A program made the position numbers and the translations under genes. 64,000 nt of DNA from Entomortierella parvispora E1425 (Eukaryota > Fungi > Mortierellomycota): the NCBI GenBank assembly GCA_020891255.1, contig BQFW01000011.1, positions 1,488,001 through 1,552,000 on the forward strand, in the 5' to 3' direction. Below, piece after piece: positions 38,538 to 45,849 of this stretch. The notes beneath the pieces are model-generated. The model had not been told where the DNA came from and ran no database searches. It worked only from the letters and a program-made list of their open reading frames with translations. How positions within the stretch are numbered: the first letter of the stretch is position 1; each line of letters begins with the position of its first letter.

Positions 38538-38645
38538 TCCCTCGGACCACCTCTCTCTCTTCACCCCAGTTTTTGTCTCCCTAGTCTCATCACTTCACTG
38601 TACTCTTTGCACTTTGGTCTTAATCCATCTTGCATATTCTATAGA

Positions 38646-40464
38646 ATGATCATGTTCATCCTCCTGGTCCTGTTCGCCATGGCCTCCAATGTTTTCGCTG
38701 ATGGTAAGAGTCATCGCCTTGTACCTTCAGCCCGCTTCTGTGGTCTCTTTCAGATGCTGTGGTCATAGTGGTGTGATCTTGATGCTGAGCGCTCTCTCTA
38801 TTTCCATGAGCTTGTCATCAAACATTATCTTCACGACATCCTGGTTCTCCTTGAAGACGCGTCAAAAAAAAAAAAAACTAAACAGACGACCCTACTCTAC
38901 CTCTACTATTATAGCCGTCTACAGTCTAATCGCTTTCCCCGCCGCTTCAGACAACTCATTTGCCGTGGAGATTGACAACAAACTGTACCCTTTGCATACG
39001 TCCAAGACTGCGTTTCCTCTGTGGTCTGGCTCGGCGGCGGATGCCTCCAGCTACCGTTACGTAGAGGTCAACAGCGAAGGCACGGTGGTCAAGAGCGAAA
39101 AGTTCACACGCAGTTTTGACCATTCAGGGGCCACCGCCACCCTCAACGAGTTTTTCGAACGCAAGACCACCATCACTAAATTACCCATCGTGAAGCAGAC
39201 CTACAAGGACGTGCGTCCTAAGGCCTCCCCAGCCTTTGACGACTCTCAGATTGCCACGATCCACCTCACCGTGGACCAAGCCGCTTTTGACAAGATGCTG
39301 GGCGAGCCCCTCGTGGAACAAAAGCTCTCGATCGGCTTTAAATTCATCAATGCCAACGTTGTCTACTCGGTCGAGAAGGCGGAAATCAAGGTCTCAGGTC
39401 ATGCCTCACGCAAGTACAACAAGGTCTCGTTAGGGATCGAGTTTGACACGACCAAGGGCGAAACGTTCTTTGACCGGCCAGCCATCAAGCTCCGAGCCGA
39501 GCGCACCGATGCCTCTATGATGTCTGAAAAGTTGTACACAGATATCCTCAACTCTGTCGGCGTCCCCACAGTCCAAGGCAGCTATGCCCGCGTTTACGTG
39601 AATGGGAAACCCCTGGGTTTCTTCTTGATGGTTGAAAACATTAAGGAGGCCTTCTTCATGAACACTGTTCATCATGGTGAAATCAAAGACGTCAAGGCCC
39701 TGGGTTCTTTGTACAAGATCAACTCGGGTAAATCGGGCACGGATCGTTGGGGCGCCTTGGGCTACATTGGCAGCCATACCACTGACTATGATCTCGGACT
39801 GTATAAAAACCAGATCCTCGGTGCCAACCCAGCGAATGACGCTATGAAACAGCTCATCACCTTTATGAAAGAACTTCATGACTGGAATCCCGCCTCTTCC
39901 GGGGGCGTGGAGTACTGGAACGAGCACCTCGACCTCCAAGGGTTCCTGCGCTCGATGGCCGTCGAGTACCTCACCGGCGCCTGGGACCTGTTTTGGTGGA
40001 GGGCCAATAACTATTTCATGTATTTCAATCCACAGCGCAAGATCTGGCAGTTCATCCCTACCGACTTTGACCACACTTTTAGCGATGGCCGTCGTCCAGG
40101 CGTTGAAACAACGTACAAGGAGTTTGGACAGACACTCCCGGGGGGTGGCAAACCCGACTTTCCTCTGGTGAACAAGGTCATCTACGGGAACAAGGAGACC
40201 AACCGGGAATTCGAGACTATCCTGCTCACCACTACCAAGAATGTCTTCAACAGCGGTGTCTTGGATGCGCGAATTGACACGTACGTGACGCAGATTCAGG
40301 AGGATGTTGCCTGGGATTACTCCCTTGACCGTTCCCATCGGCCAGGTGTGGATCCTCACTGGACTATCAAGTCCTTCCAAAAGTCGATCAATGGTCCCGA
40401 TAAAAGTTTGAAGTCCTGGATCAAGGGCCGCGCCGAATCTGTACCTCGCCAGATTCCCTCATAG
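38646..40464 (+). CDS. cotH: CotH-family spore-coat protein kinase / invasin-like protein (535 aa)
   Basis: join(38646..38703,38915..40464) = 1608 nt. Signal peptide MIMFILLVLFAMASNVFA, then AVYSLIAFP. CotH motifs IKLRAERTDASMMSEK, YARVYVNGKPLGFFLMVE, EYLTGAWD and FIPTDFDHTF. Confidence 0.9.
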
Positions 40465-41544
40465 ATAGAAGATGCCTTCCTAATAATTGTGAGCAAGAGA
40501 ACATTGAAGCATTGAAGGATGAAATACCTCTCTTGCTACCCGCTTTCATTAAAGTGAAGTCCAATTCAGCATTTTCTACCACGGCCCTCGTTTTTATCCC
40601 GCTGTCACTGCCGACACATCTACACCGACTGCAGTCGTCATTGCAATGCAGTCCGTTGGACCTGCATCGACATCTCCTAAAACCATGCCAAAAACTGGTG
40701 CGTCGTCTACGCGTCCTTTCGTAACAAGCCAGTCGGAAACATCTACTTTGTCAAAGGCTATGGAGACAGCAACCGCGCTAGCTTCAGCAACTGGACATGG
40801 AAAAAGAAGGCAAGAATCTACTGCTGGTGTCGACTGGGCACAGGAGAGCGTGCGCGCGAGCAAAGATTCCAGATGGCGCTTGTTTTTTCCCAGGGACAGC
40901 AGCTTGTGCTTCGTAGATCTTTTTTTTTTCTTTGTCTCGTTTTCTACTCATCCGTCCTTTCGTCGACATCCCCTTTCTTCTTTCCTTCCTTCCATCCCTC
41001 TGGCCATGTTCTTGAGAACCAATCTCATCAATCAAAAATTAGCTACCGTGTGGACAGCCGGGAGGGTTGCTGTCCTTGATCGCAGCGCGTCCAAAAGAAC
41101 GCGTGTCTTTGACCTTTGCTGCAGTTGACTGCCGCATGTTCCACAAGAATCCGCAACAAAAAAATCTCAATTTGGATCAATTGTTGTTCGCTTGCAAAGT
41201 TTCGTTGCTTCATGTATTTCTGGTTGTAGTCTATGTTCGTATAACTGAGGGTATCGTTATATTCTTGTGATGGAAACCTTGGTTACGATTGAAACAAATC
41301 CTTAAGCCACGGCGGAGGGAGCTGCGATCAAAGGATTTCGTCTTGGGGAGGTTGCTGACAAGCCGCCTTGAAACAGATATAAAATAGAAGAACTCAGTAA
41401 ACTCGGTACAGCTGAACTGACGTCGCAACCTGCATTTAATCCAAAAAAAAAAAAAAAAAAAAAAAAAACATGACATAGAATAAAGCAAAAACCTACAGTC
41501 CAGATACCGATTCGGCTGGTAGACCAGCCCTAGGAGTGACCAAC

Positions 41545-43458
41545 CTATTTTTTGCTGGAAAATTGATTGACCAGAGAGGAAGAGAGGAAGAGAGGAATAA
41601 GGTCATCATGTTAGTTACAATCCTGATACAATCCTGCAATTGCAAATGCCATGTCTTCATTTTTATGAGCAATTAGTAGGCTTGTCTTACGTGCTGATTG
41701 GGAAGAACAGAAACACCAAGGAGAAATGGTGGCGATGTTAGTTCCAACCTTGCAGTTGTCATGTCGTCGTCGTCATGAGCAATTGGTAGGCTTGTCTTAC
41801 GCGCTGATGAAGAAGAACAGAAACGCCAAGGATAAATACAGGTGGCCATGTTAGTTCCAATCTTGCAATTACTATGTCTTCGTCGTTATGTGCAATTAGT
41901 AGGCTTGTCTTACATGCTGATGAAGAAGAACAGAAGCACCAGAGAGAAATACAGGTGGCCGTGTTAGTTCCAATGTTGCAATTGTCATGTCTTCGTCGTT
42001 ATGAGCAATTAGCAGGCTTGTCTTACATGCTGATTGAGAAGAACAGAGACGGCAAGGAGAAATAGAGGTGGTAATGTTAGCTCCAATGTTGCGATTGCTA
42101 TGCCTTCATCGTTCTGAGCAATTACCAAGCTAGACTTACGCGCTGATTAAGAAGAACAGAACGCCCGGGAGAAATGGTGGCGATGTTAGTTCCAATCTTA
42201 CAATTGTCATGTCTTCGTCGTTATGGGCAATTAGTAAACTTGACATACTCGCTGATTGAGATAAACGGAAACACCAAGGAGAAATATAGGTGGTACTGTT
42301 AGCTCCAATGTTGCGATTGCTATGTCTTCGTCGTTCTGAGCAATTGGCAAGCTAGACTTACGCGCTGATGAAGAAGAACAGAAACGCCCAGGAGAAATAC
42401 AGGTGTCCATGTTAGTTCCAATCTTCCAATTGTCATGTCTTCGTCGTTACGAGCAATTAATAGCTTGTCTTACGAGCTGATCAAGAAGAACAGAAACGCC
42501 CGGGAGAAATACAGCTTGCCATGTTAGTTCCAATCTTACAATTGTCATGTCTTCATTTTTATGAGCAATTAGTAGGCTTGTCTTACACGCTGATTGGGAA
42601 GAACAGAAACACCAAGGAGAAATGGTGGCGACGTTAGTTCCAATGTTGCAGTTGTCATGTCATCATCGTTATGAGCAATTAGCAAGCTAGACTTACGCGC
42701 TGATTAAGAAGAAAGAAACGCCCGGGAGAAATGGTGGCGACGTTAGTTCCAATGTTGCAGTTGTCATGTCATCATCGTTATGAGCAATTGGTAGGCTTGT
42801 CTTACGCGCTGGTGAAGAACAGAAACACCAGGGAGAAATGGTGGCAATGTTAGTTCCAATGTTGCAATTGTCATGTCTTCGTCGTTATGAGCATTTAGTA
42901 GGCCTGTCTTACGTGCTGATTAAGAAGAACAGAAGCGCCCGGGAGAAATACAGCTTTCCATGTTAGTTCCAAGGTTGCAATTGTCATATCCTCGTCGTTA
43001 TAAGCAATTAGTAGGCTTGTCTTACAGGCTGATTAAGAAGAACAGAGACGGCAAGGAGAAATATAGGTGTAATGTTAGCTCCAATTCTGCGATTGCTATG
43101 TCTTCGTCGTTCTGAGCAATTAGCAAGCTAGACTTACGCGCTGATTAAGAAGAAAGAAACGCCCGGGAGAAATACAGGATGCCATGTTAGTTCTAATCTT
43201 ACAATTATCATGTCTTCGTCGTTATGGGCAATTAGCAAACTTGACATACTCGCTGATTGAGAAGAACAGAAGCACCAGAGAGAAATACAGGTGGCCACGT
43301 TAGTTCCAATGTTGCGATTGTCATGTTTTTAATCGACAGTCGGTGTTCATCAAGAGGCACCTGTAGTCTTGCGCTTTTCTATTCTATTGAACTTACGTTG
43401 GAGCAGCAATGGCGACACCTAGAAAGGCAACAAGGACAAGAAGGAATTCGATTTTCAT
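41545..43458 (-). CDS. Secreted 38-aa peptide gene assembled from fifteen 3-nt micro-exons
   Basis: Exon 1 is 43458..43397 (MKIEFLLVLVAFLGVAIAAP + AC). Micro-exons start (plus-strand low coordinate) at 43250, 43138, 43026, 42913, 42806, 42697, 42587, 42474, 42362, 42249, 42140, 42027, 41914, 41801 and 41691. The terminal exon is 41554..41545 (C AAA AAA TAG). All 16 introns have a GTAAG/GTATGT donor, a CTAAC branch site and a CAG acceptor. Predicted product MKIEFLLVLVAFLGVAIAAPTDALTAAVSADAIIATKK. Splicing is inferred from signals only. Confidence 0.8.
41555..43330 (-). repeat. Tandem array of ~107-113-bp units, each one intron plus one 3-nt micro-exon
   Basis: Recurring plus-strand blocks ATGTTAGTTCCAAT, TGTCATGTCTTCGTCGTTATGAGCAATT, CTTAC-NNN-CTGAT and GAAGAACAGAA; units differ by scattered substitutions and small indels. 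Confidence 0.97.
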
Positions 43459-43924
43459 TGTAAGGTGGTTGGAGCTTGAGTTTGTTTGAAGTAGTTTGAA
43501 CAAGGTCGAGATGGGGGGAAAGGTTTGGATCAAGCGACGGTCATGGAACAAAGAAAACGGTGGTATTTAAAGGAGTCAGAGAAAAGAAAATATCAGGGAT
43601 CAAAACTGGCATTGTTTTTCAGGAGATGATTAAAGGGGTTGCCCTTACTGTCTGGGAGGGGGCACTCAAGGTCAGATCACAGTCGTGCACTTTTACTCAG
43701 TTGCGAATTTCAGCTCGCGGCAGCAAGTTGTTTTTCTTTCTTGTCAGAGAATGGTTGACGACAACTGCTGGCTGTGGAGAGCAAGAACTCGATTTTAGAG
43801 CGTTGGAGTGTGCATCTGAATCACTGGAGATGGCTGGCAAGAGTGCGCGTTGTATGTCTCTGTGAGTCTTCATTACGCCTTGCCGAGTTCTGACCGTCAT
43901 CCGCTCAAAGCAAACGTGCCCCTG

Positions 43925-44050
43925 GCATCTCTCCTCAATAATAATAAAAAAAAAGTGGGGAGGGGGAAGAGGGACAATAGGAAGACTGGCATCTCTCAAT
44001 AATAAAAAAAAAGTGGGGAGAGGGAAGAGGGACAATAGGAAGACTGGCAT
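43925..44050. repeat. Local ~60-bp tandem duplication
   Basis: GGCATCTCTC...AATAATAAAAAAAAAGTGGGG...GGGAAGAGGGACAATAGGAAGACT occurs twice, followed by a third GGCATC start. Confidence 0.85.
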
Positions 44051-45849
44051 CCCTTTTCATCTTCATCATGTACAGTACACAGTGCACGTCAAGACACGTC
44101 TTCTGCATGATTCCTTCTGACCAAGAGGGAGAGCAGGATGCATGACTGGAAGGCGGCTTTTGGTTGTGTATCAACGGTACACCAAAAAAAAAAAAAAAAA
44201 AAAAATGGCGCCACCCGTCGCCGATGGTGATGAGAATGGTCCTCCTCCTCACCTCCATTTTCTTTCTTTGCTCCTGCTCATGCTCCGCTTCAATGGTTGT
44301 CATCGCTGACTCGTACTTCTGTCCTTTTATCTTTATAGGCTTCGCTTTGTGAATTCTACTCTTGATGATGCTGGTTGCAAAAAAGATAGGTGAGGTAGAT
44401 CAACGCCTCGAGTTTCCCGACCAATGCACATTTTTCCCCTGAAAAAAATGGGGAAAAGTGGCTGCGTGCTGATAATGGGACAGGACAGCACGGTGATGAC
44501 AAGGATATGGACGACCTGTCTTGGGTGCTAGACCTCAATGACTATACCCCACTCTCGACAACGAAAGTGAATTGTGAGGAGGCTCTTCATACGCAACCGC
44601 CTGCTCACGCGTGCCTGCATGTCTATCAGGGTGCAGGAGGGAGTTGATCGAGCTCACAAAGAATGCAGAGAGCTTGACCTGGGAGACTGAGGATATTGAT
44701 GTACAGGTGTCGGGCGATCTGGGTTCAGATTCCAAGAGGGTGACCATTTCGGCGCCAAACGTCTACATCCTCACTCCTTTCGTTGAGAGGGCATCGAGTG
44801 TCGAGTCGCTCACACAGAACGGGCTCTTAGGACCTTTGAGTTCAAAGTTGCAATCCTTCATGGAGGAGGTGACAGGGTTGGAGGAACTTTGTCAGCTGCG
44901 CTCTGTGCCGCTGGAGGACAGTCACCTCAAGTCGATGACAGGCAACATCCATGATAACTCAACATAGGTTAGACATGTTGGTGATTGGCGATCTGTTCCC
45001 CACCAGCACGTCTGGTGCTGCGCCAAGACGTTGACCTTCCAGGAGCGTGCATCTTTGAGGCGTTTGTTGAAACGACGTTGATGGCAGTTGGGGGCCAGCC
45101 ACTGGTGCACCCGATGACGGCTAAGAGCCTCACCGAGTAAAAATAACGCGAATGGTCAGCTTGAAATTCTGGTAAACCTCCAGTTCCTGTGGTTCGAGCC
45201 AAGAGGGGCGTCAATGAAGAACATGAGGGGTACCAGACATCATGTTTGGTATTCACCATTGCGTCAGGTCTCACCCTTCTTTCTGGAATGGGGGCGATGA
45301 GGACTCCCGATGTCCGCACACGTTATCGCGGTCCCCGAACTGCAGCGGATGCGCCTGAACTGGCCTCTGCTGGAAGATGTCCCGAATTGACCCACTTCCT
45401 CCGGATGCGGGTATATTGTCCATCTTTCGATCCGACGCTGCCGTTGAATGGGTGCTTGCCCATCCACGACGGATCGGATGAAGTCATCAAGAGTAATGAC
45501 CATCGCTCTAGTACCGCCAGCTGAGAACGTGCCGTCGATAGCCATCTTCCGGAGTAGGGCAGCTTTGTATTTGTATCGTAGTAGTTTGCAGTCAATATTC
45601 TCGATTGATGTTGAGAGAAGGGGTGGGTCTTCGAGAAGGCATCCTACGTCTACGGAACTTATCCGATATATTCTTTTTTGTGTTCAAACTGAGTTAGAAT
45701 GGCGTCAGGAACCGTGCTCAATTGCGAGGAGTTGCACAGCCAGCGCAGTCCTTCGTCCGTCCATCCATCCATGCACCCTTCTCATTCATTCATTCTCCAC
45801 TCCGCACTCCCTTCTTCCCCTCAACCTTCCTTCCTCATTCTTGTACATC

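Follow-up and report, generated by a model that had tools for sequence, protein, structure and literature searches.

Intron-like units separated by single triplets in Entomortierella parvispora: a candidate gene family with one-codon exons

Can a gene be so finely divided that each of its internal exons is a single triplet? The question is raised by a locus on the minus strand, positions 41545-43458, of a stretch of 64,000 nucleotides from the fungus Entomortierella parvispora E1425 (assembly GCA_020891255.1, contig BQFW01000011.1, positions 1,488,001 to 1,552,000; this whole stretch is called the window below, and coordinates refer to it). The original prediction, made from the letters alone, described a hidden gene here, with a signal-peptide exon, fifteen micro-exons of three nucleotides, sixteen intact introns, a terminal exon and an ATTAAA motif. 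A script scan combined with direct reading reproduced every coordinate of this anatomy, in which 16 introns separate a signal-peptide exon, 15 exons with a length of exactly 3 nt, and a terminal exon of 10 nt that carries the stop; the predicted 117-nt coding sequence and its product were likewise regenerated when the pieces were joined, as a spliced frame that translates into a pre-peptide of 38 amino acids. The locus appears to be one member of a gene family of the Mortierellaceae, with a design that would run from a signal-peptide exon through tandemly duplicated spliceosomal introns of ~110 nt, with a 3-nt exon between each, to a short exon with the stop. Its parts, in transcript order, are as follows.

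43564..43571, minus strand: TATA-like TTTAAATA, read directly, 106-113 nt 5' of the ATG; a possible core promoter, judging from its sequence
43397..43458, minus strand: coding part of exon 1, 62 nt, MKIEFLLVLVAFLGVAIAAP + T(AC-), with the ATG at 43458; ends in phase 2
43253..43396, minus strand: intron 1, 144 nt, GTAAGT...CTAAC (47 nt before the 3' end)...CAG
41691..43252, minus strand: array in which 15 three-nucleotide exons alternate with 14 intron units (104-110 nt)
43252-43250, 43140-43138, 43028-43026, 42915-42913, 42808-42806, minus strand: micro-exons 1-5
42699-42697, 42589-42587, 42476-42474, 42364-42362, 42251-42249, minus strand: micro-exons 6-10
42142-42140, 42029-42027, 41916-41914, 41803-41801, 41693-41691, minus strand: micro-exons 11-15
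41555..41690, minus strand: intron 16, 136 nt, GTAAGA...CTAAC...CT-rich tract...CCAG
41545..41554, minus strand: terminal coding exon, C AAA AAA TAG, completing a Thr codon and adding Lys-Lys and the stop
41435..41544, minus strand: putative 3' UTR (untranslated region), with a T26 run (41443-41468) and ATTAAA (41440-41435)

Exon 1, judged from its sequence, specifies a signal-peptide-like hydrophobic core followed by A-x-A. Its boundary with intron 1 reads ...CCAAC|GTAAGT at 43397/43396, and without splicing the read-through meets a stop immediately (ACG TAA). The fifteen micro-exon sites have the form CAG-NNN-GT[A]AG or GTATG, and the triplets read, in transcript order, CGA CGC CCT CAC CGC CGC CGT CTC CGC CGA CGC CAT CAT CGC CAC. 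Introns 1-8 measure 144, 109, 109, 110, 104, 106, 107 and 110 nt, and introns 9-16 measure 109, 110, 106, 110, 110, 110, 107 and 136 nt; the donor is GTAAG in 14/16 and GTATG in 2/16, a single CTAAC is present in each intron, 41-56 nt 5' of its end, and the terminus is CAG in 16/16. The 3' two-thirds of intron 1 already consist of the repeat unit, and the 3' half of intron 16 is unlike it. The pattern CTAAC-N35-55-CAGNNNGTRWG has 15 matches in the 64-kb window, all of them within the array, against 0.06 in shuffled sequence, and no further copies of the unit lie elsewhere in the window. The splice motifs of the array are those of the window's ordinary introns, which join open reading frames (ORFs) elsewhere in it, are 80-100 nt long and read GTAAGT...CTAAC...YAG. 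At the array itself there is no contiguous ORF of more than 63 amino acids on either strand.

How do the units vary among themselves? Tandem Repeats Finder describes them as a 113-bp period with 15.1 copies and 80% matches, plus higher-order repeats with periods of 335 and 448 bp. Pairwise identity among the 14 full units is 73-92% (mean 81.5%), and the most similar pairs, 2/11 and 3/12, point to a block duplication of ~9 units at an offset of 9. Invariant columns number 52/113 and include all 12 columns of GT.AG, CTAAC and CAG (hypergeometric P = 4e-5). The first base of the micro-exon is C in all window units, this bias being towards the preferred third codon base of neighbouring genes (33-42%), and when the columns of the unit are ranked by variability, exon base 2 comes third and exon base 3 eighth.

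A scan for tandem CAG-NNN-GT units in other genomes had been proposed together with the original prediction, and such a search in metagenome contigs, for two successive TCAGCNNGTAAG junctions 90-115 nt apart, did recover homologues beyond the window. It returned 62 stretches, of which 55 are without similarity to the family and are mostly plain satellites with an 'exon' triplet that is identical across units. The true relatives are the other seven (L008, L012, L020, L024, L029, L053 and L063), all from one metagenome, Ga0302182. L024 also bears a TCP-1 alpha gene that is 96% identical to that of Mortierella alpina, which identifies the source as a fungus of the Mortierellaceae, and the presence of flanking genes on both strands, together with interrupted ORFs, marks the seven contigs as genomic DNA. 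Common to these relatives are the signal-peptide exon, phase 2, intron units of ~110 nt, 3-nt exons and a last exon with the stop at its start. Exon 1 homologues in L024, L029, L053 and L063 share 75-81% nucleotide identity with window exon 1 and follow the consensus MKIQ[Y/C]LLV..AVLGF..AAP; every amino-acid replacement is a hydrophobic one, the codon differences divide about evenly into synonymous and non-synonymous, and the exon ends in phase 2 in 5/5 copies (window plus four metagenome loci). The last exon begins N-TAA in L008, L012, L020 and L053 and T-TTT-TAA in L024; at all five loci with a 3' end the stop thus falls in phase 2, within the first two codons of that exon. Two of the metagenome genes are complete, and their predicted products would end ...AAPTPDDDAF (L024) and ...AAPTPQNNVNTGA (L053). 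At L020:91-2500 (+), 22 exons of 3 nt follow one another; they are very diverse in sequence, and all four bases are found at each exon position. Taken together, the intron units fall into three types (window, L053 type and L020 type) that are recognisably homologous and ~65-70% alike.

Some features of these contigs deserve mention in their own right. Read in phase 2, L020 would give a peptide rich in Gly, His, Lys, Met and Pro, and in phase 0 a collagen-like one (G-P-Q-G-P-Q); the contig lacks exon 1, so that its phase is taken from the N-TAA last exon alone. At L063:1390-1420 (+) an acceptor abuts the next donor (CACCAG|GTAAGT), leaving an exon of 0 nt in the classical configuration of a recursive splice site. 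3' of the stop in L008, L012, L024 and L053, several hundred nucleotides are conserved, with motifs such as CTGCAGAAAG, CATCATATCGGCATCC and CAAGGATTTGTTTCAAGAATC; this region opens with a donor-like GTAAGA right after TAA-ACAA, and it may be a long 3' UTR, perhaps with an intron of its own.

If the units were inert, changes should be spread over them without regard to splicing. We pooled 70 introns from 8 arrays, the window and the seven metagenome contigs. Their length is 100-117 nt in 65/70, the other 5/70 being fused doubles of 203-222 nt. The donor is GTAAG, GTATG or GTGAG in 70/70, the acceptor CAG in 66/70 and TAG in 4/70, and a CTRAY branch motif stands 38-54 nt 5' of the acceptor in 63/70, with a mode of 47-48 nt. 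The exon that follows has 3 nt in 67/70 and 6 nt in 1/70 (the other 2/70 are last exons that the script mis-called), and L063 has one further unit with 0 nt. In the interval from 12 nt beyond the branch point to the acceptor, 1880 nt in all, not one AG occurs, against ~17.5 expected from base composition; this AG-free zone is kept in 58 units. When mismatch is measured against the consensus of each type, in the order window, L053-type and L020-type units, it amounts to 0.7, 4.5 and 8.5% in the splice-signal columns, 12.6, 16.5 and 18.5% in the other intron columns, and 39, 62 and 65% at exon bases 2-3. In the three unit types the splice signals are thus 2-18 times better conserved than the remaining intron columns, and exon bases 2-3 vary 3-4 times more than the intron average. 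The splice signals, and with them the spacing of exons in multiples of three, are under selection. Among the fused doubles, that of L053 has a G>C change in the donor and has dropped one codon, and in L024 a damaged acceptor and donor have merged two units, again with one codon dropped. Read from the sequences, a lost splice site merges two units into one longer intron minus one codon, which would be a safe way to fail.

Satellites chosen by the same junction pattern behave differently. In the 13 unrelated ones that are long enough to serve as controls, the triplet has a variability within the range of the remaining unit, in 8 of them an equal or lower one, and in none of the 13 does a branch motif stand at the right place. 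A plain non-coding satellite with evenly spread variation is not what we meet in the family, where the signal columns are far less variable and the exon columns far more so. Decay of CpG as the sole cause of exon variability can also be rejected, as the metagenome arrays have all four bases at exon positions 2-3. Among the metagenome satellites are a number of unrelated 71-115-nt tandem repeats (L054; L033/L036/L009; L039/L045/L051) with YAG-NNN-GTAAG once per unit. In L054, L033, L045 and L051 the triplet varies more than the other positions of the unit do (CCA/TAC/TCA; TGT/TGC; CTG/CAG). No branch motif was found in these repeats, which are probably plain satellites.

What, then, are the units? 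The same units hold frozen and hypervariable columns, a combination beyond the reach of homogenisation or youth, and the family has kept its phase, its stop position, its spacing in multiples of three and its signal-peptide exon though the intron units have diverged by a third; both observations make working introns very probable, and we hold with considerable confidence that the array units would prove to be the working introns of a real gene family. The fuller claim, that the one-codon exons are spliced into an mRNA and translated to give a secreted peptide, seems to us a reasonable but less secure expectation. It supposes that the locus is transcribed, that its introns are removed in order with the micro-exons kept, and that the mRNA is translated and the peptide secreted, each of which we infer from sequence; retention and translation of the triplets would be favoured by the C bias at exon base 1, the rapid change of bases 2-3 and the common phase of start and stop. 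We lean slightly towards a broader view in which the Mortierellaceae possess a 'one codon per exon' family producing hypervariable secreted peptides, with sequential splicing, evolution by cassettes and maybe combinatorial skipping.

Expression of such a gene might proceed as follows. Because exon 1 ends in phase 2, each mature codon would consist of the last two bases of one micro-exon and the first base (in the window, C) of the next, and of the 38 residues of the predicted pre-peptide ~18-20 would remain after signal cleavage. By what is established on splice-site recognition, a 3-nt exon would fall within the footprints of both U1, at the downstream donor, and U2AF, at the upstream acceptor, which implies that the introns would have to be spliced out in sequence, probably in the 5' to 3' direction and during transcription. 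The process would be akin to recursive splicing, yet with one codon left behind in each cycle. Unequal crossing-over may add or remove units of intron plus codon, and loss of a splice site would fuse two introns and drop one codon. Since such a design cannot be frameshifted, peptide length and sequence could change rapidly, and since all window micro-exons start with C the window array is unable to acquire a stop. Variants of the peptide within a single cell might arise through combinatorial exon skipping.

Sequencing runs offer independent evidence on the DNA, and we aligned four (X2, X3, X4 and X9) to positions 38600-44500. X2, from the source sample, is DNA of low depth and patchy coverage, with two contigs from paralogous arrays; X3 comes from the DNA of a related strain (90-95% alike), in which pieces of the array are collapsed to 2-6 times base depth; X4 has almost no coverage; and X9, which carries the same species label, is more distantly related. 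In X9 the parts that can still be aligned are stretches of ~28 nt, comprising pyrimidine tract, CAG, triplet and donor, together with the signal-peptide exon, which is found on three different long contigs. Pieces of the array are thus held by both X3 and X9, and the array is real DNA. Apparent joints in the aligned runs are breaks of short-read contigs within repeats, or paralogues. Two further observations concern copy number. Depth in X3 is 2-5 times base depth at the gene flanks (41161-41372 and 43328-43524), and one X2 contig, with a depth of ~30x against 2-6x for the other pieces of X2, joins 41278-41310 to 43418-43457; the latter is probably a multi-copy paralogue with an exon 1-like piece near a 3'-flank-like piece. 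Together these suggest that the 3' flank and the signal-peptide exon are multi-copy, as in a dispersed family that includes its flanks.

A number of results weigh against the reading of the locus as a peptide gene. A run search with the locus listed no RNA run, though this is weak evidence since a spliced transcript would hold few genomic words, and a search with three neighbouring long genes returned 11 runs, all DNA-like or of unknown kind and none labelled RNA. The four aligned runs have coverage of DNA type only, and in these runs, with their DNA-like coverage, no joint of exon 1 to the last exon was found. The 38-residue product, padded with XX to 40 residues, shares no words with any protein of 22-70 amino acids in a collection of 5.8 billion, and the pattern expected of spliced mRNA (ten C-N-N periods plus the last exon) has 0 matches in the metagenome collection. 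The mature peptides of family members have no motif in common, and hence give no sign of a conserved peptide function. The open frame of the window array is uninformative on coding: all three frames are stop-free because each micro-exon starts with C, and we have accordingly rejected absence of stops as coding evidence. The distance from branch point to acceptor, 41-47 nt in the array, is somewhat longer than the 19-33 nt of the ordinary introns of the window. In the syntenic regions retrieved, no array was found around the CotH-kinase orthologues of Podila clonocystis, Linnemannia zychae and L. gamsii or around the TCP-1 alpha genes of M. alpina and Mortierella sp. NVP85. Because the units of an array stem from recent duplications, the pooled counts are not independent. 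Finally, fifteen consecutive 3-nt exons would be unprecedented, and recognition of their splice sites would be sterically awkward.

Could the introns work without the triplets being meaningfully coding? The locus would then be an expandable multi-step intron of the recursive type, with micro-exons mostly or all skipped, or part of a non-coding transcript, and its constant product would be the signal peptide plus T-K-K, or nothing. We think this unlikely, though not negligibly so, and regard it as the main alternative. Every micro-exon is a multiple of three, so that any subset could be skipped in frame; the fused doubles (5/70) and the one 0-nt exon indicate that exon loss is tolerated; the lack of a motif among the mature peptides is as this alternative would have it; and CAG|GTAAGT with 0-3 nt between resembles a recursive splice site. 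Dispensable sites should decay, however, yet across three diverged unit types the signals are conserved 2-18 times better than the other intron columns, and there is no obvious need for a stepwise intron of 1.8 kb in a genome where introns are ~80-100 nt. The divergence of exon bases 2-3, at 3-4 times the intron average, further suggests that selection sees the exon bases, and the bias of exon base 1 is towards C, the preferred third codon base.

A more sceptical explanation is that an intron with 3 flanking bases was amplified by unequal crossing-over beside a former small secreted-protein gene, giving an inert satellite or dead gene with signals that are intact merely because its copies are young or homogenised. 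The periods of 335 and 448 bp and the unit pairs of up to 92% identity do bespeak recent block duplication, the RNA and protein searches gave no support to a gene, and the array is absent from the syntenic loci of other genera. We nevertheless regard this explanation as improbable, for units that differ by ~18% on average have lost their signals in 0/16 window introns, and homogenisation, acting on whole units, cannot yield invariant and hypervariable columns together. Nor does it account for the architecture, phase, stop and signal-peptide exon kept in a second organism with intron units only ~65-70% alike, or for the AG-free zone of 58 units, features that the control satellites lack. An error of assembly, or an array of structured non-coding RNAs, seems to us highly improbable. 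Tandem repeats are prone to mis-assembly, and short-read contigs of the related strain do break inside the array, but the same kind of array is present in independent DNA sets (X3, X9 and the metagenome contigs). As for a structured RNA, there is no match in Rfam, the unit folds no better than shuffled sequence (z +0.2 to +0.9), and the limit of 63 amino acids on ORFs of either strand also counts against it. With these alternatives weighed, working introns in a peptide-coding gene family remain the reading we favour.

It is instructive to set this candidate family beside systems with which it might be compared. The micro-exon genes (MEGs) of Schistosoma have a signal-peptide exon, short symmetric exons (3n, ~6-36 nt) and a short last exon, and code for small, fast-evolving secreted products. 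As in these, short 3n exons form most of the mature coding sequence (in the window, 15/15 internal exons are 3 nt), a signal-peptide-like first exon (at 5 loci, judged from sequence) is combined with a short last exon bearing the stop, and genes of this kind are missed by annotation pipelines. In contrast to MEG exons of 6-36 nt, nearly all exons of the window family are exactly 3 nt, and a single unit, copied in tandem, makes up the introns, so that the locus is a 113-bp satellite. The host is moreover a fungus, there is no sequence homology, and the alternative exon use that defines MEGs is here hypothetical. The comparison with MEGs drawn in the original prediction is therefore apt as an analogy and not as homology, given a fungal host and a predicted product without any word-sharing protein in the collection.

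Recursive splicing is known from Ubx and other long introns of Drosophila and from the RS-exons of vertebrates, where ratchet points leave behind nothing, or an RS-exon that is discarded. The array resembles these sites in that an acceptor stands beside a donor ((Y)n-CAG | GTAAGT), which forces stepwise, ordered removal; it differs in that one codon would be left per step, and in that its segments are tandem duplicates of ~110 nt where theirs span tens of kb. An acceptor and donor with nothing between them are not met in the window, where the exon is always 3 nt, the single case being that of L063. Introners, described in Dothideomycetes, Micromonas and others, are introns that multiply as sequence families dispersed in unrelated genes, and those of fungi (ILEs) are predicted to fold stably. 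The present introns have likewise multiplied as a recognisable sequence family within one genome, but their copies are tandem in one gene, fold no better than shuffles and recur in paralogues of a single family.

Single 3-nt micro-exons are known in animals, human RPS24 being one example. Another, isolated between long introns, occurs in Drosophila homothorax (PMC7392893). Such cases show that the major spliceosome can include exons of this length, though they are isolated, and no tandem run such as the one proposed here is known. Functional micro-exons in filamentous fungi were first reported in 2024, as a single case (PMC11121469). The original prediction knew of no array of one-codon exons in fungi, and our search of the full-text literature found none in any fungus. 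A parallel of another kind is provided by the SSSGP genes of the Hessian fly and similar families of hypervariable secreted peptides, in which the signal peptide, UTRs and introns are conserved and the mature coding bases are the most variable (PMC2955719); these genes have ordinary exons, and the inverted conservation is the sole trait that they share with the window family.

Should cDNA confirm the structure, with 15 consecutive exons of single-codon length, it would be the most extreme split-gene architecture described and could fairly be called a new one. Such a gene would test the limits of splice-site recognition, with the footprints of U1 and U2AF overlapping a 3-nt exon, and would offer a natural system for the study of ordered or recursive splicing in an organism with intron definition. 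It would also mean that peptide diversity can be generated by unequal crossing-over of intron-plus-codon cassettes without the frame ever being shifted, that a class of genes is discarded as satellite DNA by every repeat masker and gene finder, and that the repertoire of secreted peptides is under-counted in a group of fungi that is very common in soil and in association with roots.

A few further features lie at the locus and around it. On the plus strand, the T26 run of the putative 3' UTR is a perfect run of 26 A (41443-41468), directly before the ATTAAA, and ~500 bp upstream of the start codon, at 43940-44051, lies an A/G-rich direct repeat of 58 bp with 1.9 copies at 98% identity. The array adjoins a CotH-kinase gene, 38689-40464 (+), which is assigned by a Pfam match; its matches are all to Mortierellaceae, the best relatives being those of Podila clonocystis and Linnemannia zychae at 77% identity. 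This gene is intronless in the window across the part corresponding to residues 22-536 of the Podila orthologue, and the orthologues of Podila and Linnemannia zychae have a gap of 313-379 nt, a putative intron, right after a first exon of 19 residues.

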